NCBI GenBank assembly: GCA_002269645.1
Contig: NIVC01000895.1
Coordinates: 1-64,000 of the forward strand
Length of the DNA: 64,000 nucleotides
Source of the DNA: Macrostomum lignano
Lineage: Eukaryota
Reading direction: 5' to 3'
This document shows, in pieces, positions 2,239-29,600 of this stretch (within the stretch, counting starts at the first letter, position 1; each line of letters opens with the position of its first letter). The translations under genes were made by a program, and so were the position numbers. Under the pieces are notes generated by a model. That model saw only the letters and a list, made by a program, of their open reading frames with translations. It ran no database searches and was not told the DNA's origin.

Positions 2239-3381
2239 ATGTCATCTGACAACAATAAGCCTTTAGATCAGGCTCGATGCGACGCAGCTGCAGTTCGTTT
2301 CTGCACAATGTACTACAAAAGAATGAGCGACACTAGACAGAATTTGACTCCACTATATGCCGATCAGGCTGTGCTAGCTTGGAATGGTCACAGGCATTCA
2401 GGGAAACAGGTTTGATAATTTTATTTTCATTTTATTTTTTGTTGTTTGATTTTTTGAAAAGTTGTAGTCTTAAGGTTTTTACGATCATGTGAAGAGTTGT
2501 ACAGTTTTGTGAAGGTTTGTAAAGTGTTGGGAACGTTTTGTACAGTCTTGTAAAGGGTTGTGCAGTCTTGGGAAGGTTTGTGCAGTCTTAGGAAGATTTT
2601 GCAGTCTTGGGAAGGTCTGTGCAGTCTTGTGAAGGGTTGTAACGTCTTTCAAAGGTTTGTACAGTTTTAGGAAGGTACAGTCTGAAAGTATGAAGTCGTG
2701 AAAGTTTCGTAGGATTGCAATTTTAAAAGATTTAAGATTCTGGCGTCATAAATGATTCAAGGCGATGTTTTATGTTGTGTGCTATCATATTCCAAGGACA
2801 TTATCCTGAAGGGTAGCAGTATTTATCTGTTTTGTACTATACAAATTAGCATTTTGCCCCATTAAATTAGCGCGTTGATCCAGTTTTACAGACTCCACCC
2901 TGTCTCAGGCTCGAAATTATTCAAGAAAAGAAAATTAGAAGATTACAGGAAGACTTCAAAGAGCCAAATCCAGTGCGAGAGCATAACGTGTAAGAGAAAA
3001 GCCCCCCCCCCATCAGCCAAGCCGATAAACAGTGGCTTTCTTCTTGTCCGCTTGGATCTGACTTTGCCCTCTCTCCTTACTGCTCTCCCATTGGCTGAGC
3101 TAGATTAGGCCTGCCCACTGAATTCTTACCCGCAGGAGATCGGGCAGTTCTATGCTCAACTACCCAATTGCATAGCGCAGCCCTACAGCGTTAGCGCTCA
3201 ACTCCTTGACGGCGACATATTTCCGCCGAACTCGCTGCTTGCTACCTGCCACGGTCAGGTAAAATTTCTACGCTGCGAAGATCGCCGGCATAAATTATTT
3301 TCTCAAGCGTTCGTCCTGTCACGCCAGTCCGACGGCACCTTCGTCATCTTATCCGACACATTTCGCACTAGCGAGCCCTGA
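2239..3381 (+). CDS. NXT1: NTF2-related export protein (NXT1/p15), 2 exons: 2239-2409, 3136-3381
   Basis: Hand translation gives MSSDNNKPLDQARCDAAAVRFCTMYYKRMSDTRQNLTPLYADQAVLAWNGHRHSGKQ|EIGQFYAQLP...FSQAFVL...ILSDTFR. This matches NTF2/NXT motifs (F...YY, LY...A.L.WNG, F.Q.F.L, SD.FR). Phase-0 GT..AG intron. Missed by the ORF track. Confidence 0.88.
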
Positions 3382-3894
3382 CTGTTGCGCGTCTGTTTGC
3401 TTGGAACTTGTTGCTTTATTATACAGTAGTAACCGTGTTAATCCCATTGTAAGTGTGTACTTTTGTTACCATAGTGACGAAATGTTATTCGTCTACACGA
3501 TACAATGGTGTAATAATAAGAGTCAATCTTTGTTCCTATGCTGATTGCTACACTTTTAAATTCTGGCTTAATTAAGTTTTAATATGCGCGTAGGTAATAC
3601 AGTATTTATGTATGTTGTATTTTAAAAGTACATGTTCTCATTTGTACTATATGGTGTTTAACTGCATTTCTTCTGCACGATGATGATTTGATTTAACCCA
3701 GATTTTTTCAATTGACTCTTTTTACAATTAAATTAGCTAACTAGTATATGTGGATGTCGACACCTACTAAAAACGACCTGCCCCTAAAAAATTCCCTTAT
3801 TAACTCCTTTAGGAAGAATCACCCCTTCATCCTAAAGATTCGACCCTTTACCCAGGAAAGTTAATAAATCCTATTAATTGACCCTGAATAATGG

Positions 3895-6800
3895 CCTTTT
3901 TTCCTGAGAAATCACCACTTTACCTGCTAGGATCACCACTTTACCCGGTAGGATCATCACTTTACCTGGTAGGATCACCACTTTACCTAGTAGGATCACC
4001 ACTTTACCTGCTAGGATCACCACTTTACCCGGTAGGATCACCACTTTACCTGGTAGGATCACCACTTTACCTAGTAGGATCACCACTTTACCTGCTAGGA
4101 TCACCACTTTACCTAGTAGGATCACCACTTTACCTGGTAGGATCACCACTTTACCTGCTAGGATCACCACTTTACCTAGTAGGATCACCACTTTACCTGG
4201 TAGGATCACCACTTTACCTGGTAGGATCACCACTTTACCCGGTAGGATCGCCACTTTACCTGGTAGGATCACCACTTTACCTAGTAGGATCACCACTTTA
4301 CCTGCTAGGATCACCACTTTACCCGGTAGGATCACCACTTTACCTGCTAGGATCACCACTTTACCTGCTAGGATCACCACTTTACCCGGTAGGATCACCA
4401 CTTTACCTGGTAGGATCATCACTTTACCTGGTAGGATCATCACTTTACCCGGTAGGATCACCACTTTACCTGCTAGGATCACCACTTTACCCGGTAGAAT
4501 CACCACTTTACCCGGTAGGATCACCACTTTACCTGCTAGGATCACCACTTTACCTGCTAGGATCACCACTTTACCTGCTAGGATCACCACTTTACCTGCT
4601 AGGATCACCACTTTACCCGGTAGGATCACCACTTTACCTGGTAGGATCATCACTTTACCCGGTAGGATCACCACTTTACCTGCTAGGATCATCACTTTAC
4701 CCGGTAGGATCACCACTTTACCTGCTAGGATCACCACTTTACCCGGTAGGATCACCACTTTACCCGGTAGGATCACCAATTTACCCGGTAGGATCACTAC
4801 TTTACCTGCTAGGATCACCACTTTACCTAGTAGGATCACCACTTTACCTGGTAGGATCACCACTTTACCTGCTAGGATCACCACTTTACCTAGTAGGATC
4901 ACCACTTTACCTGGTAGGATCACCACTTTACCTGGTAGGATCACCACTTTACCCGGTAGGATCGCCACTTTACCTGGTAGGATCACCACTTTACCTGGTA
5001 GGATCACCACTTTACCCGGTAGGATCACCACTTTACCCGGTAGGATCACCACTTTACCCGGTAGGATCACCACTTTATCTGGTAGATTCACCAATTTACC
5101 TGAAAGAATCACCACTTCACCTCGTAGAATCACCACTTCACCTCGTATAATCACCACTTCAGCTGGTAGAATCACCACAACTTCACCTGGTAGAATCACC
5201 ACTTCATCTGAAAGAATCACTACTTCACCTGGTAGAATCACCACTTTACCTGGTAGGATCACCACTTTACCCGGTAGGATCACCACTTTACCTGGTAGGA
5301 TCATCACTTTACCCGGTAGGATCACCACTTTACCTGCTAGGATCACCACTTTACCCGGTAGGATCACCACTTTACCCGGTAGGATCACCAATTTACCCGG
5401 TAGGATCACCACTTTACCTGGTAGGATCACCAATTTACCTGCTAGGATCACCACTTTACCCGGTAGGATCACCACTTTACCCGGTAGGATCACTACTTTA
5501 CCTGCTAGGATCACCACTTTACCTAGTAGGATCACCACTTTACCTAGTAGGATCACCACTTTACCTGCTAGGATCACCACTTTACCTGGTAGGATCACCA
5601 CTTTACCTGCTAGGATCACCACTTTACCCGGTAGGATCACCACTTTACCTGGTAGGATCATCACTTTACCCGGTAGGATCACCACTTTACCTGCTAGGAT
5701 CACCACTTTACCCGGTAGGATCACCACTTTACCCGGTAGGATCACCAATTTACCCGGTAGGATCACCACTTTACCTGGTAGGATCACTACTTTACCTGCT
5801 AGGATCACCACTTTACCTAGTAGGATCACCACTTTACCTGGTAGGATCACCACTTTACCAGCTAGGATCACCACTTTACCTAGTAGAATCACCACTTTAC
5901 CTGGTAGGATCACCACTTTACCTGGTAGGATCACCACTTTACCCGGTAGGATCGCCACTTTACCTGGTAGGATCACCACTTTACCTGGTAGGATCACCAC
6001 TTTACCCGGTAGGATCACCACTTTACCCGGTAGGATCACCACTTTACCCGGTAGGATCACCACTTTATCTGGTAGATTCACCAATTTACCTGAAAGAATC
6101 ACCACTTCACCTCGTAGAATCACCACTTCACCTCGTATAATCACCACTTCAGCTGGTAGAATCACCACAACTTCACCTGGTAGAATCACCACTTCATCTG
6201 AAAGAATCACTACTTCACCTGGTAGAATCACCACTTTACCTGGTAGGATCACCACTTTACCCGGTAGGATCACCACTTTACCTGGTAGGATCATCACTTT
6301 ACCCGGTAGGATCACCACTTTACCTGCTAGGATCACCACTTTACCCGGTAGGATCACCACTTTACCCGGTAGGATCACTACTTTACCTGCTAGGATCACC
6401 ACTTTACCTAGTAGGATCACCACTTTACCTGGTAGGATCACCACTTTACCTGCTAGGATCACCACTTTACCTGGTAGGATCACCACTTTACCTGCTAGGA
6501 TCACCACTTTACCCGGTAGGATCACCACTTTACCTGGTAGGATCATCACTTTACCCGGTAGGATCACCACTTTACCTGGTAGGATCACCACTTTACCTGG
6601 TAGGATCATCACTTTACCCGGTAGGATCACCACTTTACCTGCTAGGATCACCACTTTACCCGGTAGGATCACCACTTTACCCGGTAGGATCACCAATTTA
6701 CCCGGTAGGATCACCACTTTACCTGGTAGGATCACTACTTTACCTGCTAGGATCACCACTTTACCTAGTAGGATCACCACTTTACCTGGTAGGATCACCA

Positions 6801-7312
6801 CTTTACCTGCTAGGATCACCACTTTACCTAGTAGGATCACCACTTTACCTGGTAGGATCACCACTTTACCTGGTAGGATCACCACTTTACCCGGTAGGAT
6901 CGCCACTTTACCTGGTAGGATCACCACTTTACCTGGTAGGATCACCACTTTACCCGGTAGGATCACCACTTTACCCGGTAGGATCACCACTTTACCCGGT
7001 AGGATCACCACTTTACCCGGTAGGATCACCACTTTATCTGGTAGATTCACCAATTTACCTGAAAGAATCACCACTTCACCTCGTAGAATCACCACTTCAC
7101 CTCGTATAATCACCACTTCAGCTGGTAGAATCACCACAACTTCACCTGGTAGAATCACCACTTCATCTGAAAGAATCACTACTTCACCTGGTAGAATCAC
7201 CACTTCACCTGGTCGAATCACCACTTCACTGGTAGAATCACCACTTCACCTAGTAGAATCACCAATTCACCTGGTAGAATCACCACTTCACCTGGTAGAA
7301 TCACCACGAAAC
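3895..7312. repeat. 21-bp minisatellite (ACTTTACCTGGTAGGATCACC) with a roughly 1-kb higher-order period
   Basis: Direct reading; a diverged marker block recurs at about 5074, 6064 and 7033. Confidence 0.97.
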
Positions 7313-7389
7313 CCTGGAAAATAGCCAAGTTGTACTCTTGCCAGGTAGCGAGGTCAGTGCTCAAACAAACTCAGAATAATAATTAGTCC

Positions 7390-7671
7390 TCAGAATGATG
7401 ATGAAGCGCAAAGTCTGACGCAGAAATGGCGGAGCCTTGAAAACGCGGAAGCGAATTGCGTCAACGCAAGAATTGTCAGAATGCCTATTCGATAGTCAAT
7501 ATTTCGCAGAATTTGACGGTCGCCTGTGTTGGCGATCTCTTCTTGGACTTTCCGGCTTTCGCAATCATTCTGACTTCTTGGTTTAGATGCTCGCAACCGA
7601 ATTTTTAGGGCTCGCCTAATTTTGTTTTGGCTTAGATTAACTGATCTTTGTCCAAAAACACGTTTGCGCAT
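7390..7671 (-). CDS. Unassigned 93-aa ORF (basic N-terminus, hydrophobic C-terminal stretch), head-to-head with GLRX5
   Basis: ATG-initiated ORF in unique, GC-balanced sequence 120 bp upstream of GLRX5. No family recognised. Confidence 0.25.
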   Translation of the reverse strand: MRKRVFGQRSVNLSQNKIRRALKIRLRASKPRSQNDCESRKVQEEIANTGDRQILRNIDYRIGILTILALTQFASAFSRLRHFCVRLCASSSF

Positions 7672-7791
7672 GACTTCTAGTTTTCAATCTGACTGAGGGC
7701 ACACTGTTACACTTTGTCAACTTATTGCACTTTGTCTACTTAAGTCACTTGAGATGCTCGTACACACTCATTTCAGAACTTTGCAATCAGC

Positions 7792-8265
7792 ATGTTTAAT
7801 TTACGCTGCCTAGTCAATACGACAGCTTCGCTGCGTCAATGTAAGCTATCGCCAACCCTGTCTTCACTGCTTACGTCATCGCTATCGACTTCCAGCACCG
7901 CCGGTTCTATGCACAATAAAATAGCCGAAATGGTCAAAGCCAACAAGGTTGTCGTCTTTATGAAAGGCGTGCCGGAGGAGCCACGTTGCGGTTTCTCCAA
8001 TGCCGTTATTAAAATTCTCGAATTTCACGGCTTAAAACCGGACGTGTATTCCGCGCACAACGTTCTCGACAATGAGGAGCTGAGACAGGATATTAAAACG
8101 TTTAGCGATTGGCCAACTATTCCTCAGGTGTACTTTAATGGCGAGTTCATCGGCGGCTGCGATGTGCTGATTAAAATGCATCAAAATGGCGAATTGATTG
8201 AGGAGTTGAAGAAGATTGGTATCAAGTCCGCTTTGCTGGCTGCTCAGGAGGAGAAGAAGGAATAA
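7792..8265 (+). CDS. GLRX5: Monothiol glutaredoxin 5, mitochondrial
   Basis: CGFS active site, [23 protein letters not shown], and an N-terminal Ser/Arg-rich transit-like peptide. Single exon. Confidence 0.96.
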
Positions 8266-8550
8266 GTGAAACTTTATGGATCTGAGGAACTTCGTGTTGT
8301 TTCGTGGGTTTTTAACGGAAACATGCTAAATGTTTTGTAACTTCATTTGATCTGTAGTAAATAGCACATTTGATAGTTGAGTCTGACTACATAAAATCAT
8401 ACAGTGTTTACTAATAATAGTTTTCATCAAACTGTTTTCATTGCTGCTCATCTGTGAAGAAAATAAAAAACGACATACATGCTCATAATTGATCATAATT
8501 GTATTTCTCACTAATTTTTCATCGAGCTTAAAAATGATATAGAATTCCTT

Positions 8551-10958
8551 CATAGGCGTAGGAACATTTCAAAAAGTGGGGAGAGGGGCAGGTTCAGTGA
8601 CGGATTTAGGGTGCACGCCCCCGTTGAGTTAGATTTTTTATATGGAAAATGCACATTATCATGCACCGATTATTTTCAGAATCCATCTTGTCAGCACTCA
8701 TTTTATAAAGCGCCGCAGGTACTCATTTTAGCGCCGCAGGTACTCATTTTAGCTCCGCAGGCACTCATTTTAGCGCCGCAGGCACTCATTTTAGCGCTGC
8801 AGGCACTCATTTTAGCGCCGCAGGCACTGATCTTGGCGCCGCAGGCACTCATTTTGGCTCCGCAGGCACTCATTTTGGCGCCGGAGGCACTCATTTTAGC
8901 GCCGCAGGCACTCATTTTATCTCCGCAGGCACTCATTTTAGCGCCACAGGCACTGATCTTGGCGCCACAGGCACTCATTTTGGCGCCGCAGGCACTCATT
9001 TTGGCGCCGCAGGCACTCATTTTGGCGCCGCAGGCACTCATTTTGGCGCTGCAGGCACTCATTTTGGCGCCGCAGGCACTCATTTTGGCGCCGCAGGCAC
9101 TCATTTTAGCGCCGCAGGCACTCATTTTGGCGCTGCAGGCACTCATTTTAGCGCCGCAGGCAATCATTTTAGCGCTGCAGGCACTCATTTTAGCGCCGCA
9201 GCCACTCATTTTAGCTCCGCAGGCACTTATTCCGGCGCCGCAGGCACTCATCTTTGCGCCGCAGGCACTCATTTTGGCGCCGCAGGCACTCATTTTAGCG
9301 CCGCAGGCACTCATTTAAGCGCCGCAGGCACTCATTTCGGCGCCGCAGGCACTCATCTTGGCGCCGCAGGCACTCATTTTGGCGCCGCAGGCACTCATTT
9401 TGGCGCTGCAGGCGCTCATTTTGGTGCTGCAGGCGCTCATTTTAGCGCTGCAGGCACTCATTTTGACGCCGCAGACACTCATTTTTGCGACGCAGGCACT
9501 CATTTTGGCGCCGCAGGCACTCATTTTAGCGCCGCAGGCACTCATTTTGGCGCTGCAGGCACTCATTTTAGCGCCGCAGGCAATCATTTTAGCGCTGCAG
9601 GCACTCATTTTAGCGCCGCAGCCACTCATTTTAGCTCCGCAGGCACTTATTCCGGCGCCGCAGGCACTCATCTTTGCGCCGCAGGCACTCATTTTGGCGC
9701 CGCAGGCACTCATTTAAGCGCCGCAGGCACTCATTTTGGCGCCGCAGGCACTCATATTTGCGCCGCAGGCACTCATTTTGGCGCCGCAGGCACTCATTTT
9801 TGCGACGCAGGCACTCATTTTAGCGCCGCAGGCACTCATTTTGGCGCCGCAGGCACTCATTTTTGCGACGCAGGCACTCATTTTAGCTCCGCAGACACTC
9901 ATTTTAGCGCCGCAGGCACTCATTTAAGCGCCGCAGGCACTCATTTTGGCGCCGCAGGCACTCATCTTTGCGCCGCAGGCACTCATTTTGGCGCCGCAGG
10001 CACTCATTTTAGCGCCGCAGGCACTGATCTTTGCGCCGCAGGCACTCATTTTGGCGCCGCAGGCACTGATCTTTGCGCCGCAGGCACTCATTTTGGCGCC
10101 GCAGGCACTCATTTTAGCGCCGCAAGCACTTATTTTAGCGCCGCAGCCACTCATTTCGGCGCCGCAGGCACTCATCTTGGCGCCGCAGGCACTCATTTTA
10201 GCGCCGCAGGCACTCATTTTAGCCCCGCAGGCACTCATTTTGGCGACGCAGGCACTCATTTTAGCTCCGCAGACACTCATTTTAGCGCCGCAGGCACTCA
10301 TTTAAGCGCCGCAGGCACTCATTTCGGCGCCGCAGGCACTCATCTTGGCGCCGCAGGCACTCATTTTTGCGACGCAGGCACTCATTTTAGCTCCGCAGAC
10401 ACTCATTTTAGCGCCGCAGGCACACATTTAAGCGCCGCAGGCACTCATTTTGGCGCCGCAGGCACTCATCTTTGCGCTGCAGGCACTCATTTTGGCGCCG
10501 CAGGCACTCATTTTAGCGCCGCAGGCACTGATCTTTGCGCCGCAGGCACTCATTTTGGCGCCGCAGGCACTCATCTTTGCGCCGCAGGCACTCATTTTGG
10601 CGCCGCAGGCACTCATTTAAGCGCCGCAGGCACTCATTTCGGCGCCGCAGGCACTCATCTTGGCGCCGCAGGCACTCATCTTGGCGCCGCAGGCACTCAT
10701 TTTGGCGCTGCAGGCGCTCATTTTGGTGCTGCAGGCGCTCATTTTGGTGCTGCAGGCACTTATTTTGGCGCTCCAGGCGCTATGTTTTGTCGCCCTGCAG
10801 CAAAATGCATTCATGCAAAGCAGCAAAAACTAAAAATAAGTCTACATTTTACATTTTAAATGTGGAGGGGACAGATACCATTACTGCCCCCCCCCCATTT
10901 TAAAAAGTAGGGGGGGGGGCATGGCCCCACTGCCCCCCCTTCCGTTCCTACGCCTATG
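8551..10958. mobile_element. Non-autonomous TIR element carrying a 21-bp satellite
   Basis: CATAGGCGTAGGAAC at 8551-8565 and its exact reverse complement GTTCCTACGCCTATG at 10944-10958, with G/C-run subterminal sequence. Confidence 0.7.
8707..10790. repeat. 21-bp minisatellite (CTCATTTTGGCGCCGCAGGCA)
   Basis: Direct reading; about 100 units. Confidence 0.97.
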
Positions 10959-11038
10959 AGATCCTTTGTTTTGTTCTAAAAGCAGATATATTGTGCTATT
11001 TGCAGAAATAAACCAAGTTTTTTTGCAACATCTTTCAG

Positions 11039-12280
11039 GTCAAGCAACGCCAACCAATACGCGTGTTCATTCGCGAGCCGCACCACGAGGTGCTATTGGA
11101 TATCTACCGTTTAATCGGTTCAAAGCGTTTGCCGTTTTCTCGTTTAACACTGTTGCACCTGGACTCGCATCCTGATCTGCAGTTGCCGCCTAAGTTAACA
11201 GCCAACGATTGCCTCGACGCTGGAGTTGATGGCGCGTTGCAATCGCAACTTAGTATTGGGAGTTGGATCCTGCCAGCTGCCTATGCTGGCCACTTTGATA
11301 GCGTTGTTTGGCTGCGACCGCCTTGGTCGGACCAGCTGCCGGATATAAAGCGTCGTCTAGTTCGTATTGGTCCTTGTCCAGTTGAATCGTCAGCCGCTGC
11401 TGCTGTTGAAGCACCTTTACGTTTAGACTGCGGCTTGCCTTATTTTGCGGCCGAGTGTATGTACTGTCACCATTTGACCTCCATACCCGAAGCAGAGATA
11501 GGCAAGAATAGTAATAAGATTAGCCAATTTCACCTGTGCTCGCACGAGTTTAGCAGTGCACTGGATTGCGATTGTGTCGGCCAATCGGGTCTCGGTCAGG
11601 CTGCCGCTTACGTTGTCGATGTTGACTTGGACTATTTCTCTACGCAGGACGCTCCGTCGAAGTGGCTACCAGCTGATCTGATTAGCGCCGCTCGTAGCGT
11701 CTACGGCTGGCGCGGTGGCGAAATTGTCGAAGAGGGCCCGGCTCTTGAGACGGCTTGCAGGCGAAGGGAGCAACGCTTGGAGCGGTTGGGTCAAATCATG
11801 ATGGAAGTTTCCAGTGAATCGGATGGTAAAACTGAAGCTAGTACGAGTAGCGAGGCTATCAACGTTGATGAAGTTGATGACGCCGAGAAGGATGATGCTC
11901 AAGATCGAACTGCTCTTCGTTCTCTGTTCGCGTGGGCTCGTCGTCATGGAAACGGCGATAGTAGCGCTACTGCTAATGCTACAACATGGACGCCAGAAGA
12001 TTTACACGAAGTACTCAGTGGTCAAGACGGTCTTGGTGGCGACCTACCGCATCGAGTCTCTTCGCCAGACGAGATTCGCCTGATGATTGACAGTTTTGGC
12101 AATTGGTTGAGTGAGTTGTCAGCTCGATACGGTCCTCCTGCTTGCGTCACCATTGCCAGATCGTCTCTAGACGATTACTGCCCAACTGAACAGGTGGAGC
12201 TCATTCAGACTGAGTTAATTGCCAGTCTGCGTAAAGTACTAGAGCCTTACTATCGCGTTGATGTTGTTTGCAATTATTAA
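11039..12280 (+). CDS. C5orf22: UPF0489/C5orf22-like protein; no in-frame ATG at the 5' end
   Basis: HHEVLLDIYRLIGSKRLP, LLHLDSHPDL, LSIGSWILPAAYAGHF, VDVDLDYFS, LPHRVS and VTIARSSLDDYCP match the family throughout. The frame is open from the acceptor TTTCAG (ends 11038); there is an in-frame TAA at 11009-11011. Confidence 0.9.
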   Translation, partial: VKQRQPIRVFIREPHHEVLLDIYRLIGSKRLPFSRLTLLHLDSHPDLQLPPKLTANDCLDAGVDGALQSQLSIGSWILPAAYAGHFDSVVWLRPPWSDQLPDIKRRLVRIGPCPVESSAAAAVEAPLRLDCGLPYFAAECMYCHHLTSIPEAEIGKNSNKISQFHLCSHEFSSALDCDCVGQSGLGQAAAYVVDVDLDYFSTQDAPSKWLPADLISAARSVYGWRGGEIVEEGPALETACRRREQRLERLGQIMMEVSSESDGKTEASTSSEAINVDEVDDAEKDDAQDRTALRSLFAWARRHGNGDSSATANATTWTPEDLHEVLSGQDGLGGDLPHRVSSPDEIRLMIDSFGNWLSELSARYGPPACVTIARSSLDDYCPTEQVELIQTELIASLRKVLEPYYRVDVVCNY

Positions 12281-12735
12281 TGCGAAAGAAAATTTATCGA
12301 GGAAGAAGTGAAATAACTTATTTTACTAAAGCATTTTAAATTTGTGTTCATTTACTAAGATTCATACGCGCTTTCAAGTAAAATTAGTGTTGTAGTGTTA
12401 GTATGAAAGAGGTCCATTTAAATCGGATTGTGTTTTGCTTTTTTTGTTGGATTAACAAGATTTTCCCATGGCACACGAGGCCCTTCAATTTTCACTAGGG
12501 AGACAGCTGACCATCATGACCTTTCCTTGAATGGCTCCGGCATAGGTTCTCTTGATATTTAATATTTATACTGTCTTAGTATTTAGCTGCCTCCACCCTA
12601 CCCTAGCCAATGTTGCAATAACATGGACTGTAGGTAAAGTACACATTCATAATTTCAAGGCACCTTAGTAGTCAATTACAAGTGCTACATTTTATGAATC
12701 GTCAATTGTCAATGTAAATTTTTATATTCAGCCAA

Positions 12736-15049
12736 ATGTCGCATCAACAGCTGCCTCGTAGTCAACAACACAAGCAAGAAGCAACGAAGACGCCAATTTA
12801 TTTAGACTACAATGCTACTAGTCCAATGTCTTCGCAGTCTCGCGATGCCGTTATTGAAGCTATGTACACCGGCTGGCAGAATCCGAGCGTTTGCAGTCGG
12901 ACTCGCAGCATAGTTGAAGTTGCTCGCAAATCTGTAGCAGATCTGATTGGCTGTCAGCCAGCAGAGTTGATTTTCACATCCGGCGGTACAGAGAGCAATA
13001 ATTGGGCTGTGAAACAGGCTGTTTGGATGTACCGGAATTTGGATAGAGCTGAGAATGCTATTGTTGGTCGGCCTCATGTTGTAGCCAGCTGTATTGAACA
13101 CGACTCGATTCGTAAACCTATTGAACGACTGTTGGCTCTAGGTTTAGTTGATGTAACCTGGTTGCGCATCGACTCAAGCACTGGCGCTCTGGCAAATGTT
13201 GGCGATCTCGTTGCTGCATTGCGCTGGCGCAATACCTGTTTAGTGACCGTGATGTGGGCAAATAATGAGACTGGGGCCATATTTCCCATAGCCGAGGTAT
13301 AAACCAGTGATGTTTACAAAAAGTGTCTGTAAAAACAACTTTTAAGTGCCTCGCTTGACACTTAAGGGAGGTTTCATATAATGCGTAAATTTCAAAAGTC
13401 GCCAAAAATCAAATCAACATGCCAATTATGAAAAAAGCAGAAAACAAGAAGAAACAATACCTAAATTATGAGGCTTAAAACTTTTCTGTGATGTGAAATT
13501 TAGGTCTTGGGAAAGCACCCCATCCTAATCGCAGCCGGTTAGTCCTCGAGTCCTCTTCTCCCGCCTCATCTTCCTAATTTCCTCGCTCCTCTTATATTCT
13601 CTCCTGTCATCTCCCAACTCATCTCTCATCTCATCTTCTCTCTCCCCTTTCATCTCTTATCTCTAGTCTTTAGTCTCTCCCCTCTCCTCTCTTCCTTCTC
13701 CTTTCCTTTCTCACTAGGCCCGCGGCCATGAGCTGGATTCTTTATCTGGCCCCTAAGGTAAAAAAATTGCCGACCCCATGATTTAAAGACTTGAACTAAG
13801 ACGTCCGTTAAAAAACTCAACATCGCACACACTTAGTTGAAAAAATCACGCGAACAAATAATTTCGCAGATTGCAAATGCGCTCTCGGAATGGCGTCGCC
13901 TAAATAGCCTGACAGTCGATTCGTCGTGTTCCTCCTATGCCAACTCTGGCCTGCCATTGTTCCACACTGACGCTTGTCAAGCTGTCGGCAAAGTGCCTGT
14001 CAAAGTTCCCAATGGATTAGATCTCCTAAGCTTGGCTGGTCATAAATTTCAAGGACCCAAAGGTGTTGGGGCGCTGTATTGTAGCGCTAGATTGCGCGCT
14101 AAATTGGCGCCACTGCTGCTTGGCGGCGGACAGGAGAATGGCGTCAGGGCTGGCACTGAGAATACACCGGGACTTGCCGGTCTGGGGGCAGCCGCGCGTC
14201 TGTCGAAGACTCAGTTGGATGATGTTGATGGCAGACAGCCTCTGATGGTACAGCTGGCTGAGATTCGAGATCAGCTGCGGGATAGACTGGTAATTCTGGG
14301 TGTTGAATTGGATTTCCTCTGTGTGTCATTCCTCCTTCGAAACCACCGAAAGTCAATTCGATATCCCAGTAATATGTCAGTCGCTCAATAAAAGCTTCAA
14401 TTCCAATGGCTAGATATCTCAATAGTCATAACGTCACTTTGATTCCAATCCGATGGCTAGATATCTAGATATCTCAATAATCGCTCTGATTCCAATGGCT
14501 AGATATCTCAATAATCGGTTTGATTCTAGTAGCTAGATAATTAAATAACCGCTTCAATTCTAGATTATCTTTAAATGCTATAATTTTCCCTAACATTTCA
14601 CGCAGCTGAACTCCATTAACGATCCGGAGATGTCAGAATTCACCGGCTTTCGACTAATCGTGAACAATAATTTTCCAAACGGTCCCACTCTGCCAAACAC
14701 GCTCAACGTGTCAGTTGTATCAACAAAACTATTGCAATCAGCTGGTCAGAGTAAAGAATTAGCAACTGATAATAATACTGACGATATGGAACTGCGCGAA
14801 GCTGCTTTAGCTAGGAACTATCTACTTAGTAGAGGCCGCATTCTTGCCAGCGCCGGTTCAGCTTGTCACGCCGCCGCCAATTCCGGCGCATCCGCTGTTC
14901 TGTTAGAATCTGGCGTCAATCCTATGGCTGCCAGATCAGCTGTTAGGCTGAGCGTTGGACCGGATACTACCATAGACGATGTTCTGGGCGCGGTTGAGGA
15001 ATTCAATGCGGCTCTGCTGCAGTGGCGAATTGAGCATCCTTCTCGTTGA
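12736..15049 (+). CDS. SCLY: Selenocysteine lyase (NifS-like, PLP class V aminotransferase), 3 exons: 12736-13296, 13870-14289, 14606-15049
   Basis: [48 protein letters not shown] (PLP lysine), GGGQE...GTEN and SAGSACH. It lacks the NFS1-type SGSACTSASLEPS motif and a mitochondrial presequence. Both introns are phase-0 GT..AG. Confidence 0.85.
14395..14570. repeat. Short degenerate tandem repeat (ATTCCAATGGCTAGATATCTCAATA) in SCLY intron 2
   Basis: 3-5 diverged copies. Confidence 0.65.
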
Positions 15050-15624
15050 AAATGTTACCGCGACAAGAGTCTTGTGACTTTTTAACGACTCAAATGACTT
15101 GTTTGATTCTACAGCGACTCAGTCTCAAATAGACTTTTAGGCGACTTGTACTGCGAAATCTTATCGTTTTAGAGTTGTCTGAAGTCACTTTTTTTTCTAT
15201 TTTGTTGATTTGCAACGATTCTGGAGCGACGAAAGTCGTGGCTCTGGGACGCTTCTTTGGCCTGGGTACCATTTTAATCGGATTTATTAATGATTGTTTT
15301 ACGGTAGCCACATTTTATGTGTTGCACATACAGCATTTCTGATTCTAGGCTTGTACAGATCTGAAATACTAACAACAGTTGAATTCATGTACAGTAGTTG
15401 CTTGTTGACTGAGTCTCACTTTTTTCTATGCCAAAATATGCTTTTTTCGTGCTAAATACACAGAAGTTTTTGTTTTTCTTTTTATTGGGATTTTAATTAT
15501 AGTTGCATAGTTATTGGTTTTCTTATTTCATTTGCTCGTAGAAACGGTAAATTAAAAAAAATTCGATGATTGTCTGTCTTTTGGGTTTCTTGTCTTAGTT
15601 GATTTGTGTCCTTTTTTCCTATGC

Positions 15625-15905
15625 ACATTTGTCTCTCTGTTACTGTGTGAGTGTCTCTGTCTATGTCTGTCTGTCCGTCTGTCTGTCTTTCTCTTAGTTT
15701 CTGTCTGTCTGTCTGTCTGCCTGCCTATCTGTCTGTCTGTCTGTCTCAGTGTCTGTCTGTCTTTCTCTTAGTGTCTGTCTGTCTGTCTGTCTGCCTGCCT
15801 ATCTGTCTGTCTGTCTGTCTGTCTCAGTGTCTGTCTGTCCGTCTGTCTGTCTTTCTCTTAGTGTCTGTCTGTCTGTTTGTCTGTCTGCCTGTCTAGCTGT
15901 CTGTC
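15625..15905. repeat. (CTGT)n microsatellite
   Basis: Direct reading. Confidence 0.92.
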
Positions 15906-16066
15906 TCCCTAGAAAATTGTTATTTTTCTCATCTCTACTATGAACTTTACTTGAGCAATCAAAGAATCAATATCAAGTCTTCTACAAAAACGCACTCCCA
16001 CAGCGAGCAGCAGCTCAGTAGCAAGTTGTCAATCAAGCAAGCCATCCATCAGCAGTGCAGCTTGGC

Positions 16067-19000
16067 ATGGCCTCAAACAGCGTGATCAAGCCGAAGACTC
16101 AAGCCGGCAAGCGAGCATTAGCCAGGCGAGAAGAGAAGGTGATAGAAAACACAAAGTCATGCTTACTCATCCGCGGCGGCAATACTAGCGAAGCCATTGG
16201 TTCCTGTCTAAAAGATTTGTACAGCTTAAAAAAGCCGCACGCTCTGATGCTGAAACGCCGCAATCCAATTTTACCATTCGAAGAGATTAGCTTTGTTGAA
16301 AAGATGAGTCGAAAGTACGACTGCTCGCTATTCGCTTTTGCAAGCCATTCGAAAAAGCGACCGAATAATCTGGTGCTAGGCAGGCTATTCAACTACCAGC
16401 TGCTGGATATGATTGAGTTTGGCGTTGAAGGCTACCAGCCATTGTGTACTTTTCCCGTTGCCAAGGTGCCTGTTGGCACTAAGCCATGTCTTAGCTTTCA
16501 GGTGAGTCTAATTGCTGAACATTATTCAAATATTATTTTATTGTAGTTTGGCTTAGACAGGATGACTGTGATAACTGTGATCTAGACATGTGGCTACTGT
16601 AATCTAGACGTGTGATTGCTGTCATCTAGACATTCTGATTGCTGTCATCTAGGCATTGTGATTGCTGTCATCTAGGTTTTGTGATTGCTGTCATCTAGGC
16701 ATTGTGATTGCTGTCATCTAGGCATTGTGATTGCTGTCATCTAGGCATTGTGATTGCTGTCATCTAGGCATTGTGATTGCTGTCATCTAGAGATTATGAT
16801 TACTGTTATCTAGACATTGTGATTGATGTCATCTAGGCATTGTGATTACTGTTATCTAGACATTGTGATTGCTGTCATCTAGACATTGTGATTGCTGTCA
16901 TCTAGACATTGTGATTGCTGTCATCTAGACATTATGATTACTGTTATCTAGACATTGTGATTGCTGTCATCTAGACATTGTGATTGCTGTCATCTAGACA
17001 TTATGATTACTGTTATCTAGACATTGTGATTGCTGTCATCTAGGCATTATGATTACTGTTATCTAGACATTGTGATTGCTGTCATCTAGGCATTGTTATT
17101 GCTGTCATCTAGACATTGTGATTGCTGTCATCTAGACATTGTGATTGCTGTCATCTAGGCATCTAATGAGTGAAATCTAGATGGGATATGGCCGATCAAT
17201 ATATTTAAATATGTTTTGGCCATCTTAGCCAATAATCTTGGCATCTAGACATCCTAGGCTATGATTTAGACAAATTAGTGTGCTATGACTGATTTGATTA
17301 AACCTGGTGAATGCGATCTGAAAAATCTCTCCTACACCTTAAAACAATTATTTTAAGGGCGAAGAGTTCGACAGCGACCCAACTCTGATGGCTATTAAGA
17401 ACCTGCTGCTGGACATGTTCCAAGGTCCTCGGGTTGAGAAGATTCGTCTCCAAGGCATTGAGCACCTGATTCAATTCTCCTATTGCGATGGCCAGATTCT
17501 TGTCAGGTGAGGCTTTTGTGACGCATATCATTGATGCGACTCCTACTTTCTTAATGATATCCCAGAATATTCCCAAAAAGAAAGCAAATCTGGGGGCGAC
17601 TTGTGACGATTTACCGGCAGACTCGAATTTAACTGACGAAGACAAATACAGCAGAGGCAAATTGTGTAGCGGTAGCACTCGATGATAGTGACGAATGATG
17701 CGGGCGGTGGCCGCAGTTCTCATTTATTGTAACGGTATGAGTGGATAGTTAGGGCTCATTATTATCAATTCCGTCTGGGTAGTTAATAGAGATGAGCCGG
17801 AGTATTTGCTGAATCAGTAAGGAATGCACTGGGCGGCTGCGCAACAATAAGATAGATGATAGATGATAGAGCGAGTCGATGAGCCTGAGGCAGTGGCGAT
17901 GATGTGATGACAGTGATCGTGTGGTGGCGGTACTCGTAGCGAGAACCCTTTACAGACGGTAGTGGTGGCGTGGTCGAGAATTGGCAGAGGCGTGGTTTAG
18001 AACTGTGGCAGAGCGAGACGGGTAAACAGCAAACAAGGGTGAAAAACAGGGGTCTAAAAACAAATGTCTAACCACGGGCGCCCCAGCCAGACAGGACTGA
18101 TAAGGAGCGGGCTGGGGTGGGTGCGCGAGGAGAGCTTAATATCAGGCTAGCATAATATATGCGCGGCTTTTCTATTGGCCGGCGAGAAAAACCAACTTGA
18201 AAACAGAAATTATCGATCGCATTGTACATAGGCTTTACAAACGCACGCAATGTTGTTTAAAATTCTTTGGGCATTATTATAAGCAGACGTTAGAGTACGA
18301 GACCATTAAATTAACAATATTATAGCTTTCGCTAAAACGGCCCTTGTCGGGGCTACCTCAACTGACAACGTCACAGACTCAAGCGACTGTAAATGCGACG
18401 GATATGCGACTGTTGAGTCACGAGCGCATCATATAACAGCTCCTGTGATGGATGACCCTTGTTCAATCGCATCAATCAGCCGCTGGCGATCTGCTACAGG
18501 AATTGCTGGCGCCACTGAATGGCGTCGCTTTCAGGCCAAAGACGAGCAAACCGGGGAGGAGGGAGGGACAGAGAGCCATAAAATCTCAGTCCGATTCCCG
18601 TTTTGAATGGATTTTTCCCATATTGAATGTCCAAAGTTATAGTCTATGGCCAAGCCTCCCTCAGTAGACTTTGCTAAACTGCTTAAGTTCATGACTAGGG
18701 TGCGATCTGTGGCCTGGCTTGAATGTCTATGGCGTCCCGTTTTGATTGTCTCTTGACTCTTGGAGGAATTTTTTTGGCGACTTGTACCGTGACATCTTGC
18801 TGTTTTAGAGTCTTCTAGAGGAACTTCTTTCCTATTTTTTACCTGTGTTACCTACGACTCTTGAGGCGACGCAAGTGACTGGGGATCAGTCGTCAGATCA
18901 ACCATCCCAAACCGAACCCGCAGATCCTATCGCATCCTGCTGAAGAGCTCCGGTTCGAAAATTCCCCGAGTCGAGCTGTTCGAAATGGGTCCGCGTTTCG

Positions 19001-19284
19001 GTTTGCGGCTGCGCAGGCACAAGCTGGCAACGCCGGAGCAGTTTAAGCAGGCTCGCCGTCAGCCCAAAGTTGCCACGATCAAGAAGATCAAGAACATTGT
19101 GCCGGACGATGGTCTGGGCAATCGTCTCGGTCGTGTGCACGTCGGCCGGCAAGAGTTGGACAAACTGCAGACAAGAAAGGTCAAGGCTTTGAAACGACCT
19201 CGAGAGGATTTCAATGCCGCCGATGGGAAGAAGATTAAAAAACGACGTTTGTCGGATAATAAGAAGCAAAAGAATAAGGGATGA
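16067..19284 (+). CDS. RPF2: Ribosome production factor 2 (Brix domain), 3 exons: 16067-16501, 17358-17506, 18924-19284
   Basis: KPKTQAGKRAL, SHSKKRPNNLVLGR and DMIEFG; a middle exon found by hand (GEEFDSDPTLMAIKNLLLDMFQGPRVEKIRLQGIEH); then RSYRILLK..PRVELFEMGP and LDKLQTRKVKALK. Intron phases 0 and 2 are consistent. Confidence 0.93.
16565..17170. repeat. 23-bp minisatellite (TGTGATTGCTGTCATCTAGRCAT) in RPF2 intron 1
   Basis: Direct reading. Confidence 0.93.
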
Positions 19285-19407
19285 AATTGATTTGGGAAGG
19301 TATCCTGTACCTCTGTTATGCAGTTTAAATTGCTTTTGCTTTAAGGCATCTTGGTAATATTGCAAGACCAATCATTAACGATCACATTGAATAGCTATTA
19401 TCAACCA

Positions 19408-19790
19408 ACCATAGCAACCAATTGATTACATCCACGCCATAGCAACCGATTAATTACATGCACTCCATTGCAACCGATTAATTACATGCACTCCATTGCA
19501 ACCGATTAATTACATCCACTCCATAGCAACTGATAAATTATATCCACTCCATAGCAGCTGATTAATTATATCCACTCCATAGCAACCGATTAATTACATC
19601 CACTCCATAGCAACCAGTTAATTACATCCACTCCATAGCAACCAGTTAATTAAATCCACACCATAGCAACCAGTTAATTAAATCCACTCCATAGCAACCA
19701 GTTAATTACATCCACTCCATAGCAACCAGTTAATTACATCCACACCATAGCAACCGATTTAACTACATCCACTCCATAGCAACCAACCCA
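19408..19790. repeat. 28-bp minisatellite (CCATAGCAACCGATTAATTACATCCACT)
   Basis: Direct reading. Confidence 0.92.
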
Positions 19791-20322
19791 TAACCTTTAC
19801 AGGAAATTCATCAAACAAACAACCTAAACAAGAAAAAAGAATCTAGGTTTCTCTTAGTCTAGGTGGGTGCTTCTTAAACTTGGCAATATTCATGAACTGC
19901 ACTTCAGTAGCTACAATGTAAGGACCGGTTTGTTTTCAAAACATTTTCCCACTATGCGCATTTTCATTAATTGCTAAAAGCAAAGTTTTGAAAGCAAAAA
20001 TTTCAATTGTCTGCCGTCTTGTCTGTTATTGTCAGCTGGACAAATTTAAATACACGCGCAAACTGGCGAGGAATTTTACTCGCTGTAATGTTTTTGAATA
20101 TTGTTTCTGCGATTTACAATTTTTTTATAAATCGTTATCTAGGCTTTGTGATCAGGGATATTTTGTAGAAACTCCCATTCATTTCGAGGTGTCGACTTGA
20201 ATAAAAATACAAACAATAATATCACCCGGCCAGTCAGTGGGATTTAATAAGGAGATGAACTCTAGAAGTATACTACTAGTAGTAGTTAAGCCCACAACTC
20301 TTAAGTAATAATACTACTACTT

Positions 20323-20355
20323 CCACGACTACTACTACTACTAGTACTAGTACTA

Positions 20356-20398
<43 letters not shown>

Positions 20399-20416
20399 TT
20401 GCTACTACTACTACTG

Positions 20417-20458
<42 letters not shown>

Positions 20459-20660
20459 TTGCTACTACTACTACTGCTACTACTACTACTAATACTACTA
20501 CTACTGCTACTACTACTACTACTACTACTGCTACTACTACTACTACTACTAGTACTACTGCTACTACTACTACTAATCCTATTACTAATACTTCTACTAC
20601 TACTACTGTTATCATTATTATTTTTTTTTGTTACTATTATTATTATTGGTATTATTACTG
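20323..20660. repeat. (ACT)n/(ATT)n microsatellite
   Basis: Direct reading. Confidence 0.95.
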
Positions 20661-20729
20661 CTATAAGGATCGTTAAATTCCAGTTTTTACGCGTCACCCA
20701 TTAAATCCTGGCTAAACTTGATCAAATTC

Positions 20730-21371
20730 ATGCCAATCATCTCTATGGCTCGACTCGTTCTCATTCGCCGACTTTGCACGGCAGCCTTAGAGACCCAGCA
20801 GCAGGAAAAGTTGAAAGCAAATTTCTGGCATCGTCAGTATTCGAATCTGTCCTCTTATCTACGCCGGCTTCTAGTAGATTACCGACAAGCTGCCGCGGAA
20901 GCCCTGGCCGACATGGAGTCTGCACCGCGTAAAACTCTGGCTTACCTGTTTGTGGCCTCATTAGGCATTGTGGCTTGGCGAAACAATCCAAGCTACGGGG
21001 ATTACACTAATCAGTTGCGACAGTGCAGCCTACAGTTGGGACAATTATCCCCATCGGTTAGAAGTCCCCGATGCGCTGAGTTTATTAACCGACTGTGCCA
21101 ATTGAGAGATGCTCAACAATTGAGACGGTTGAATCTGGGATTTGTCTCGTTGCTATGGGCTACGGAGCTGAGCTCGGACTGTCGACTGCCCGATCACACT
21201 TGCGAGCATTTGAAACCGCGCTGGACTCGATTGAGACCAATTGATGTTGGCTGTTTCTCTCGCTGGATTCTGCTGTCGGGTGCCCTCAGGGACTCGGATG
21301 TCAACGAGGCGGAGTGGGGACAGTTGAGGCTTTCACCGGCTGATCCTGTAATTAGCGATGCCTGGGACTGA
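20730..21371 (+). CDS. TIMM29: Mitochondrial TIM22 complex subunit Tim29
   Basis: LLVDYRQAA, a transmembrane segment, LRRLNLGFVSLLW, CEHLKPRW and DVGCFSRWILL..RDSDVNE.EW match C19orf52/TIMM29 as I recall it. First ATG at 20730. Confidence 0.8.
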   Translation: MPIISMARLVLIRRLCTAALETQQQEKLKANFWHRQYSNLSSYLRRLLVDYRQAAAEALADMESAPRKTLAYLFVASLGIVAWRNNPSYGDYTNQLRQCSLQLGQLSPSVRSPRCAEFINRLCQLRDAQQLRRLNLGFVSLLWATELSSDCRLPDHTCEHLKPRWTRLRPIDVGCFSRWILLSGALRDSDVNEAEWGQLRLSPADPVISDAWD

Positions 21372-25451: not shown

Positions 25452-26604
25452 GTTTGCCAACTCGATGACTCTGAAATGCTTGACTTATTTGATGCTTAGG
25501 ATCCTTCCTTCCATTGACACCCCCTGCAATTGAAGATAGTAGCTATTTATCACTTTGAGCAAATAAATCTAAAGAATTCGAAGCAATCAGGAATAACAAA
25601 ACCGACTTTTTAAAGTGAATCATTTTTTTATTGTTGTTCCTGCAGTGTCCCTCAAAACAGTTGGTAGCCAACGACCAAACTGTGGCTGGTAACGTCTCGT
25701 GAAAACGTTATGATTATCAATTAGACACGAATTTGACAGGTGTCAACAACTAGAGGTGTTAGCCTTTCGATTTTTAATTCAATCTTTTATGCACATGTAC
25801 TCATAAGCAGTGATTGCTAACAAAACTTGCAAGTTTTACGTGCATTGACTTCTTCCGGATATGAAGCACGAATGATCCTGTTGAGCTTGGATGCCTGATC
25901 TCGCGAAAAGACATTGGGCCCGTTCTATGTTGAGATCGTTCTTAGCTTCTATCTCCGCAGTGTAGAAGTTTCGACGTACGATCAAACTTGCGCTACGACA
26001 GCTTTATATTGTAGTACGATCCCGTTGTGGAAGAAATTGAAATGGAGATCGGGAAATGCAAACGTTATAAAAATTATTCACAAGATGAAATCGATTGTTA
26101 GTTGACACAAGGATAAATACCTATGCGCAGTTAAAACTGTTGAGCTTCAGTCCAGAATTCATGGCGACGACTGAAGGCACTTAATAGCACAGAATATATA
26201 TATTTCGAACCTACCCAAAGTTAACTAAATATCTAGAAAACCCTTGGTTAGAAAGTAAAATTAGATTAAAATTTCAATTATAGAATTCTACAGTTGCTGT
26301 CCTTACCTAGCCGTGCATGAATTGTCTTCCTATCCGTATCAAAATGCAGGTGTTTTTTTCATTCTCTACCCCCTTTTCCGTCCTCTGTACGTAGTCTTCC
26401 CCTCCATATACGAGAGTTTTGCGCATATTTGCACGTGTTTGTACATAAATGTATGCACATTCACGAGAACTGCGGGCGCTTGCAGAAGCAAATAAGAGCT
26501 ACGCGCGTTACACTTAAAAGCCATTTACGCTTGTAGCTATCGTAAACAGCATTTTTATCTGACTCTGCAGTCTGAGGAAGTTAAACTGCCAATTTAGGTC
26601 TGCA

Positions 26605-29600
26605 TCAGCTGCGACTGAGTCAGTAGCAAGGAGAAAGCACCGGTGACTGAGACAGTAGCAAGGAGAAAGCACCGGTGACTGAGACTGCAGCAAGGAGAAA
26701 GCACCGGTGACTGAGACAGTAGCAAGGAGAAAGCACCGGTGACTGAGACTGCAGCAGGGAGAAAGCACCGGTGACTGAGACTGCAGCAAGGAGAAAGCAC
26801 CGGTGACTGAGACTGCCGCAAGGAGAAAGCACCGGTGACTGAGACAGTAGCAAGGAGAAAGCACCGGTGACTGAGACTGCAGCAAGGAGAAAGCACCGGT
26901 GACTGAGACTGCAGCAAGGAGAAAGCACCGGTGACTGAGACTGCCGCAAGGAGAAAGCACCGGTGACTGAGACTGCCGCAAGGAGAAAGCACCGGTGACT
27001 GAGACTGCCGCAAGGAGAAAGCACCGGTGACTGAGACTGCAGCAAAGAGAAAGCACCGGTGACTGAGACTGCCGCAAGGAGAAAGCACCGGTGACTGAGA
27101 CTGCAGCAAGGAGAAAGCACCGGTGACTGAAACTGTAGCAAGGAGAAAGCACCGGTGACTGAGACTGCAGCAAGGAGAAAGCACCGGTGACTGAGACTGC
27201 AGCAAGGAGAAAGCACCGGTGACTGAGACTGCAGCAAGGAGAAAGCACCGGTGACTGAGACTGCAGCAAGGAGAAAGCACCGGTGACTGAAACTGCCGCA
27301 AGGAGAAAGCACCGGTGACTGAGACAGTAGCAAGGAGAAAGCACCGGTGACTGAGACAGTAGCAAGGAGAAAGCACCGGTGACTGAGACTGCAGCAGGGA
27401 GAAAGCACCGGTGACTGAGACTGTAGCAAGGAGAAAGCACCGGTGACTGAGACTGCAGCAGGGAGAAAGCACCGGTGACTGAGACTGTAGCAAGGAGAAA
27501 GCACCGGTGACTGAGACAGCAGCAAGGAGAAAGCACCGGTGACTGAGACAGCAGCAAGGAGAAAGCACCGGTGACTGAGACAGCAGCAAGGAGAAAGCAC
27601 CGGTGACTGAGACAGCAGCAAGGAGAAAGCACCGGTGACTGAGACAGCAGCAAGGAGAAAGCACCGGTGACTGAGACAGCAGCAAGGAGAAAGCACCGGT
27701 GACTGAGACAGCAGCAAGGAGAAAGCACCGGTGACTGAGACAGCAGCAAGGAGAAAGCACCGGTGACTGAGACAGCAGCAAGGAGAAAGCACCGGTGACT
27801 GAGACAGCAGCAAGGAGAAAGCACCGGTGACTGAGACAGCAGCAAGGAGAAGCACCGGTTACTGAGACTGCAGCAAGGAGAAGCACCGGTTACTGAGACT
27901 GCAGCAAGGAGAAAGCACCGGTTACTGAGACTGCAGCAAGGAGAAAGCACCGGTGACTGAGACAGCAGCAAGGAGAAAGCACCGGTGACTGAGAAAGCAG
28001 CAAGGAGAAAGCACCGGTGACTGAGACAGCAGCAAGGAGAAAGCACTGGTGACTGAGACTGCAGCAAGGAGAAAGCACCGGTGACTGAAACTGCCGCAAG
28101 GAGAAAGCACCGGTGACTGAGACTGTAGCAAGGAGAAGCACCGGTGACTGAGACTGCAGCAAGGAGAAAGCACCGGTGACTGAGACTGCAGCAAGGAGAA
28201 AGCACCGGTGACTGAGACTGCCGCAAGGAGAAAGCACCGGTGACTGAGACTGCCGCAAGGAGAAAGCACCGGTGACTGAGACTGCCGCAAGGAGAAAGCA
28301 CCGGTGACTGAGACTGCAGCAAAGAGAAAGCACCGGTGACTGAGACTGCCGCAAGGAGAAAGCACCGGTGACTGAGACTGCAGCAAGGAGAAAGCACCGG
28401 TGACTGAAACTGTAGCAAGGAGAAAGCACCGGTGACTGAGACTGCAGCAAGGAGAAAGCACCGGTGACTGAGACTGCAGCAAGGAGAAAGCACCGGTGAC
28501 TGAGACTGCAGCAAGGAGAAAGCACCGGTGACTGAGACTGCAGCAAGGAGAAAGCACCGGTGACTGAAACTGCCGCAAGGAGAAAGCACCGGTGACTGAG
28601 ACTGCAGCAAGGAGAAAGCACCGGTGACTGAAACTGCCGCAAGGAGAAAGCACCGGTGACTGAGACTGTAGCAAGGAGAAGCACCGGTGACTGAGACTGC
28701 AGCAAGGAGAAGCACCGGTTACTGAGACAGCAGCAAGGAGAAGCACCGGTTACTGAGACAGCAGCAAGGAGAAGCACCGGTGACTGAGACAGCAGCAAGC
28801 AGAAGCACCGGTGACTGAGACAGCAGCAAGGAGAAGCACCGGTGACTGAGACTGCAGCAAGGAGAAAGCACCGGTGACTGAGACTGCAGCAAGGAGAAGC
28901 ACCGGTGACTGAGACTGCAGCAAGGAGAAAGCACCGGTGACTGAGACTGCAGCAAGGAGAAGCACCGGTGACTGAGACAGCAGCAAGCAGAAGCACCGGT
29001 GACTGAGACAGCAGCAAGCAGAAGCACCGGTGACTGAGACTGCAGCAAGGAGAAGCACCGGTGACTGAGACAGCAGCAAGCAGAAGCACCGGTGACTGAG
29101 ACAGCAGCAAGCAGAAGCACCGGTGACTGAGACTGCAGCAAGGAGAAAGCACCGGTGACTGAGACAGCAGCAAGGAGAAAGCACCGGTGACTGAGACAGC
29201 AGCAAGGAGAAAGCACCGGTGACTGAGACAGCAGCAAGGAGAAAGCACCGGTGACTGAGACAGCAGCAAGGAGAAAGCACTGGTGACTGAGACTGCAGCA
29301 AGGAGAAAGCACCGGTGACTGAAACTGCCGCAAGGAGAAAGCACCGGTGACTGAGACTGTAGCAAGGAGAAGCACCGGTGACTGAGACTGCAGCAAGGAG
29401 AAGCACCGGTTACTGAGACAGCAGCAAGGAGAAGCACCGGTTACTGAGACAGCAGCAAGGAGAAGCACCGGTGACTGAGACAACAGCAAGCAGAAGCACC
29501 GGTGACTGAGACAGCAGCAAGGAGAAGCACCGGTGACTGAGACTGCAGCAAGGAGAAGCACCGGTGACTGATACTGCCGCAAGGAGAAGCACCGGTGACT

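Follow-up and report, generated by a model that had tools for sequence, protein, structure and literature searches.

How can a conserved protein be made from a gene that carries no start codon of its own? [quoted passage not shown] The first-pass annotation had proposed that the missing AUG is donated by the spliced leader (SL), giving a mature mRNA that reads SL-AUG-GTC-AAG-CAA and that depends on trans-splicing to be translated. This proposal is supported by the analyses presented below, in particular by the deposited CDS start at 11039 and by SL-like base changes in a paralogous locus, and we regard it as probable that this homologue, devoid of its own start codon, takes its AUG from the trans-spliced SL.

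A conserved reading frame without a genomic initiator

Direct reading of the sequence bore out the initial description of the locus, with an in-frame TAA at 11009, no ATG before the conserved N-terminus, and a first in-frame ATG located about 140 codons downstream and after conserved motifs (11459, codon 141). The position of the TTTCAG ending at 11038, followed by GTC in frame, was also exact. This GTC at 11039 shares its frame with the upstream TAA, and the frame, which reads VKQRQPIRVFIREPHHEVLL, continues without a stop through 413 codons, up to a TAA whose last base is 12280 (Table 1). ATG is absent in any frame from 10960 to 11228, while the codons at 11012-11038, upstream of the ORF start, are open. 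Early in-frame near-cognate codons are ATA at 11057, GTG at 11063 and ATT at 11069. Taken alone, the chance of the acceptor being in frame is 1/3. A start at 11459 would deprive the product of the HLDSHPD motif. Because of the stop at 11009, the position of the first in-frame ATG past the N-terminal half of the domain, and the lack of a plausible cis-spliced exon (see below), no genomic in-frame AUG can yield the conserved full-length C5orf22 protein.

Table 1. Features of the C5orf22 locus and its neighbourhood (window coordinates; a slash marks the acceptor junction)
Feature	Position	Strand	Remarks
GLRX5-like gene, upstream neighbour	7777..8265	+	CDS right after tttcag/; SL AUG in frame; own ATG 7792
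Repeat element in the GLRX5-C5orf22 spacer/outron	8550..10959	.	Perfect 16-nt terminal inverted repeats TCATAGGCGTAGGAAC around a 21-bp satellite
In-frame upstream TAA	11009..11011	+	Direct reading; kept in all three paralogous loci; ends the frame ahead of the gene
Pyrimidine-rich tract and 3' splice acceptor TTTCAG (11033-11038)	11018..11038	+	Proposed SL trans-splice acceptor; matches [T/C]TNCAG
CDS of the UPF0489/C5orf22 (peptide-arginase-like) homologue	11039..12280	+	Single exon, 413 codons plus stop; no genomic initiator
In-frame GTG, codon 9	11063..11065	+	Rival near-cognate initiator; direct reading
HLDSHPD motif, codons 40-46	11156..11176	+	Family-conserved; seen in orthologues and in the OspR alignment
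First in-frame genomic ATG, codon 141	11459..11461	+	Start adopted in the annotation of L003, a frameshifted paralogue
Acceptor ttcag/ (ends 12731) of the selenocysteine-lyase-like gene	12727..12738	+	SL AUG out of frame; own ATG 12736

Protein family and expected N-terminus

The ORF matches the full length of Pfam UPF0489 (PF12640; residues 9-200, model positions 1-167 of 167, E = 1.3e-35, 123.7 bits for a cut-off of 27), and this conserved domain begins 8 codons past the acceptor. Searches of the protein collection revealed 122 homologues at E <= 1e-5, the best match being a Macrostomum lignano protein. Homologues from arthropods, annelids and an acoel display 28-36% identity over 95-100% of the query. 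Most of the 122 are labelled 'UPF0489 protein C5orf22 homolog' or 'misexpression suppressor of ras 6'. Among relatives, only OspR (PDB 8brp), a bacterial peptide arginase, has a solved structure; its residues 5-101 align to residues 7-100 of the ORF, so that the folded domain starts about 7 residues after the acceptor. The EPHHE, HLDSHPD and DVDLDYFS motifs of the ORF align with orthologues and with OspR. Human C5orf22 has been placed in the same Pfam family as OspR and hypothesised to be a peptide arginase, and metal-coordinating Asp/His residues are retained in the peptide-arginase family (PMC10028609); by analogy, the HLDSHPD motif of the present homologue may have a metal-coordinating role. 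The protein resembles the UPF0489/C5orf22 family (bacterial OspR, FlmR and OhkR) in its full-length domain match, in its N-terminal ExH and HxDxHxD-like motifs, in its DxDxDxFS block and in its C-terminal RSxxDxYxP block, but for the animal proteins an enzymatic function is so far a hypothesis (PMC10028609).

The SL-dependent model predicts an N-terminus that is normal in length for the family: the ExH motif near the N-terminus would have its conserved Glu at residue 14, as compared with residues 7-45 in 90 Met-initiated orthologues. Tick proteins have the N-terminus MVRPVPVYVVEPHHH. When orthologues were checked for a genomic ATG, as had been suggested initially, the Fasciola gigantica protein (MQKPISVVIVEAHNE...) was found to begin at one. 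SL-AUG dependence is therefore not universal among flatworms.

A start codon probably donated by the spliced leader

The M. lignano SL has the sequence CGGTCTCTTACTGCGAAGACTCAATTTATTGCATG; a GTAAG donor comes immediately after it in the SL RNA gene, where the boundary reads TTGCATG/GTAAG (PMC8629364). According to the M. cliftonense and M. hystrix genome paper, the final ATG is likely part of the SL and provides a start codon for translation (PMC10468722). Published data thus bear out the assumption of an AUG at the end of this species' SL (PMC8629364; PMC10468722). The top motif at M. lignano trans-splice acceptors is [T/C]TNCAG (PMC8629364). In a computed model, joining the SL to position 11039 creates a 414-aa ORF, MVKQRQPIRVFIREPHH..., that opens at SL nucleotide 33; the only AUG upstream in this SL-exon model (nucleotides 33-35) is in frame, with a G at +4 and no intervening stop.

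Based on these elements, the pre-mRNA of the C5orf22 homologue, probably transcribed within a cluster of co-oriented genes, would be SL trans-spliced at the TTTCAG ending at 11038. Since the 35-nt SL ends in AUG, the mature mRNA would read UUGCAUG/GUC AAG CAA at the junction, and reads spanning it would be expected to join ...ATTGCATG directly to GTCAAGCAACGCC. SL reads would join at 11039, and ribosomes would start at the SL AUG, predicted to be the first AUG of the mRNA and to open the 414-residue protein in frame. With no other usable start in the genome, the full-length protein would be obtained from the trans-spliced mRNA only. The SL AUG falls out of frame on many mRNAs, such as that of the next gene, for which leaky scanning is needed, and this counts against the model. 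No SL RNA gene was detected in the window when the SL sequence was searched with up to 3 mismatches, and TTGCATG is present there at chance level (5 and 4 occurrences per strand for about 3.9 expected). The protein collection contained no transcript-derived MVKQRQ... product, the corresponding 90% cluster having only three members, all derived from NCBI genome records.

The deposited Mlig_3_7 annotation (GCA_002269645.1) is consistent with this model. On NIVC01000895.1, whose record and window coordinates coincide, the CDS has 11039 as its very first base and opens with VKQ instead of Met, and the deposited product (P0121, VKQRQ...VVCNY, 413 aa) is identical to the window ORF. This annotation was produced by cutting transcripts at experimentally mapped SL sites (TBONE) before running TransDecoder (PMC5730564). 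Because the 5'-partial ORF was not extended into the open codons at 11012-11038, a transcript 5' end at 11037-11039 is implied. The contig carries three ATG-less CDS starts located at [TC]TNCAG (7777, 11039 and 12732/12733), a motif whose density in the window is 0.0029 per base; a fourth ATG-less CDS, that of Tim29 at 20733, is not at such a motif.

Paralogous loci and SL-like base changes

Two more copies of the gene were identified in the assembly, hereafter designated as L001 (NIVC01000056.1) and L003 (NIVC01000032.1). All three copies lack the ATG and have the upstream TAA, and as the ATG-less state is common to all, it predates their divergence. Variable columns among the three loci number 33 in 258 nt of upstream sequence and about 20 in the 1242-nt CDS, the CDS being several-fold less divergent than its flanks. 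This drop in variability sits at the acceptor, with the last upstream difference at 11037. The window copy is the sole intact one of the three: L001 has a D42N change in HLDSHPD together with a 2-nt deletion, and L003 a 1-nt deletion. The synonymous to non-synonymous ratio among paralogues (6:10) shows no departure from neutral expectation, on numbers too small to prove purifying selection. In the annotation, L003 was called from a downstream Met (273 aa) and L001 was deposited as 5'-partial. Gene models of L001 (4372, 6001 and 7714) begin 21, 6 and 28 nt past their acceptors, and two of them exclude a genomic ATG; owing to these ragged 5' ends, annotated starts in the assembly are not uniformly reliable and do not always coincide with exact SL sites. 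For the same reason, a second in-frame acceptor suggested by the L001 CDS start (GTCAAG/CAA) was considered weak.

Differences between L003 and the other copies just 5' of three junctions follow a particular pattern: 7 of 7 correspond to the SL base in exact register. TTCAG is changed to GCATG at the GLRX5-like gene, CAG to ATG at the lyase-like gene, and CAG to CTG at C5orf22 (A to T at -2), the last 1-4 bases being altered at L003 sites 496-500, 7272-7273 and 5580 (window equivalents 7772-7776, 12729-12730 and 11037, respectively). As Mlig_3_7 was polished by Pilon with RNA-seq in addition to DNA reads (PMC5730564), these changes are probably polishing artefacts, footprints left at the three junctions by RNA-seq reads that bear the SL. 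End-to-end alignment of such reads would produce exactly these changes, extending more or less far according to expression level; changes of this kind destroy acceptors and create spurious ATGs in the assembly. The C5orf22 footprint consists of one base and could alternatively be a real mutation that killed the acceptor in a decaying copy already bearing a 1-nt deletion. A further prediction, that positions 20730-20732 upstream of Tim29 would read CAG in paralogues, failed, all three having ATG. With a single base at C5orf22 and this failed prediction, the footprint argument is supportive rather than decisive.

Alternative explanations

Loss of function would offer another explanation for the missing start, the locus being either decaying and untranslated or the source of an N-terminally truncated product initiated at ATG 11459. 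The frame-breaking deletions in both other paralogues and the neutral-like substitution ratio given above are compatible with such a decay, as is the 273-aa product that annotators called from the equivalent of ATG 11459 in L003. Yet the window copy keeps an unbroken 413-codon ORF with a full Pfam match and a conserved C-terminal TIARSSLDDYCP block, the CDS has diverged far less than its flanks, and the ATG-less state is older than the three copies. Moreover, a product initiated at codon 141 would be devoid of the first strand and HLDSHPD motif of the arginase-like fold, and decay is thus improbable. Less probable still is initiation at one of the three genomic near-cognate codons instead of the SL AUG, even though these share the frame of the ORF and shortly precede the conserved EPHHE motif. 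Initiation at near-cognate codons is as a rule inefficient, and ribosomes scanning the trans-spliced mRNA would first encounter the in-frame AUG, which has a G at +4 and is located 8 codons further upstream. The GTG at 11063, which had been named from the outset as a competing initiator, is not favoured because it lies downstream of that AUG. Non-AUG initiation has been documented in SL-bearing organisms (PMC9851317), but so has the role of the flatworm SL AUG as an initiator.

The same acceptor could also be joined in phase 0 to an upstream cis-spliced exon supplying a genomic ATG, for which one candidate was found (ATG 10805 to aat/GTGGAG at 10861, 19 codons). However, none of the five ATG-to-phase-0-GT candidates in 8266-11008 matches the donor consensus GT[AG]AG, and the best of them lies inside the repeat element and is broken by a 7-nt insertion in L003. 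The remaining spacer is made of the GLRX5 3' region and satellite, and the transcript-based annotation places the CDS from 11039 without an upstream exon, so that this route to an ATG, named at the outset as one that would refute the proposal, is very unlikely. The least likely of these explanations is an assembly error hiding a real genomic ATG. The assembly is PacBio-based, and RNA-seq polishing appears to have altered junction bases in one contig, but three independently assembled loci agree over 60 nt around the acceptor, with the exception of one T-run length, one G/A difference and the L003 base at -2, and the nearest upstream ATG (10956) meets a stop within 7 codons. Initiation at an AUG donated by the SL is thus the preferred reading of the locus.

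Comparison with known systems and implications

Every reported flatworm SL has a 3'-terminal AUG (PMC12582326). That this AUG serves as initiator methionine was shown by Cheng et al. (2006, J Biol Chem 281:733), as summarised in later papers (PMC9851317; PMC12582326). According to the same summaries, more than 40 Schistosoma cDNAs require the SL AUG (Cheng et al. 2006; PMC9851317; PMC12582326), and 28% of the transcripts that are trans-spliced in S. mansoni have the SL AUG in frame (PMC9851317; PMC12582326). The present locus resembles the SL-AUG mRNAs described in those accounts (Cheng, Cohen, Ndegwa & Davis 2006; 'slORFs' in PMC9851317) by an SL ending in AUG and by a proposed acceptor that puts this AUG in frame with a conserved ORF having no usable AUG, and since these two properties are combined the N-terminus would be supplied by trans-splicing. 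It differs in that the cases covered by these summaries are mainly from Schistosoma mansoni and supported by cDNA evidence, whereas the present one concerns the free-living macrostomorph M. lignano and is known from genome sequence, annotation and indirect evidence. The case fits the SL-AUG-dependent class on every feature that this analysis could test, and the mechanism itself was already published in 2006; no report of a C5orf22 homologue in an SL-AUG-dependent role was found.

With three ATG-less copies in M. lignano as opposed to a Fasciola orthologue with an ATG, reliance on the SL AUG might be a lineage-specific state fixed in Macrostomum, a 'start-codon outsourcing' that evolved after SL acquisition; separately, Mlig_3_7 may carry systematic SL-derived changes at junctions. 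Taken jointly, these two proposals are speculative and somewhat more likely to fail than to hold. If true, translation of a conserved peptide-arginase-like enzyme would require prior trans-splicing, and the SL-derived polishing changes could be used to map SL junctions across the genome. The locus would also add, from a free-living model flatworm, a clear example of a conserved gene translated only via trans-splicing, and would support a functional role for the conserved 3'-terminal AUG of flatworm SLs. From a practical point of view, genes of this kind are deposited as 'partial' or cut to a downstream Met, as illustrated by the paralogue reduced to 273 aa, and adding the SL AUG to their models would yield the correct full-length protein. 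Constructs designed for such genes in M. lignano transgenesis would need an added ATG, and the apparent SL footprints are a warning on RNA-seq polishing of assemblies in organisms with trans-splicing.

Neighbouring genes and spacer repeats

Six consecutive annotated genes occupy the + strand from 2239 to 21371 (NTF2-like, GLRX5-like, C5orf22-like, selenocysteine-lyase-like, Brix and Tim29), three of which have acceptor-defined 5' ends, and this gene row looks like a polycistronic, SL-resolved cluster. It shares with the operon-like SL clusters described in M. lignano (Wudarski 2017; Ustyantsev & Berezikov 2021) the co-orientation of neighbours with [TC]TNCAG at their 5' ends, as well as a repeat-inflated spacer of the type reported by those authors. 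While the full spacer between the GLRX5-like and C5orf22 genes (8266-11008) spans 2.7 kb including the repeat element, it is reduced to about 360 bp without the repeat, under their 1-kb operon threshold; this spacing would point to an operon for the C5orf22 cluster. A functional Fe-S theme for such an operon (GLRX5 with NFS1) was rejected, as the Aminotran_5 gene is closest to selenocysteine lyase and not to NFS1.

At the GLRX5-like gene (7777-7794), the in-frame SL AUG would stand five codons upstream of the genomic ATG and could lengthen a presumed mitochondrial presequence by six residues. In the mRNA of the selenocysteine-lyase-like gene, a 10-codon uORF (12732-12765) beginning with the SL AUG would overlap the gene's own ATG, and because of this overlap the mRNA would need leaky scanning past the SL AUG. 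The annotated Tim29 CDS directly follows a genomic ATG (20730-20732) without an AG acceptor. All three Tim29 paralogues (window 20730-20747, L007 and L008) have ATG at this place, with C or T at -4, and in L008 the CDS begins right after the next ATG instead. This start may reflect SL footprints shared by every copy, an artefact of trimming, or genuine 5' ends.

The element in the GLRX5-C5orf22 spacer looks like a terminal inverted repeat (TIR) transposon. Its 21-bp satellite comprises 98.5 copies (8710-10778), and a C10...G10 palindrome is located within the element at 10887-10918. All three paralogous loci contain the repeat, at copy numbers that vary widely among them. On the minus strand, the satellite is open over 8703-9713, with a heptad MSACGAK and ORFs of 203 and 132 aa, and the weak match of a satellite ORF to Pfam DUF6944 is probably a low-complexity artefact. 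Very long minus-strand ORFs with a strong base skew also occur at 3874-7224 (1116 aa) and 26514-30003 (several overlapping, 400-730 aa); their Pfam matches had no aligned stretch over threshold, and they are probably low-complexity repeats rather than genes. Finally, repeats also inflate the spacer between the co-oriented Brix and Tim29 genes, which contains two more tandem arrays (19400-19790 and 20280-20640): a satellite with a period of about 28 bp and a long microsatellite of TAC/TACTGC.
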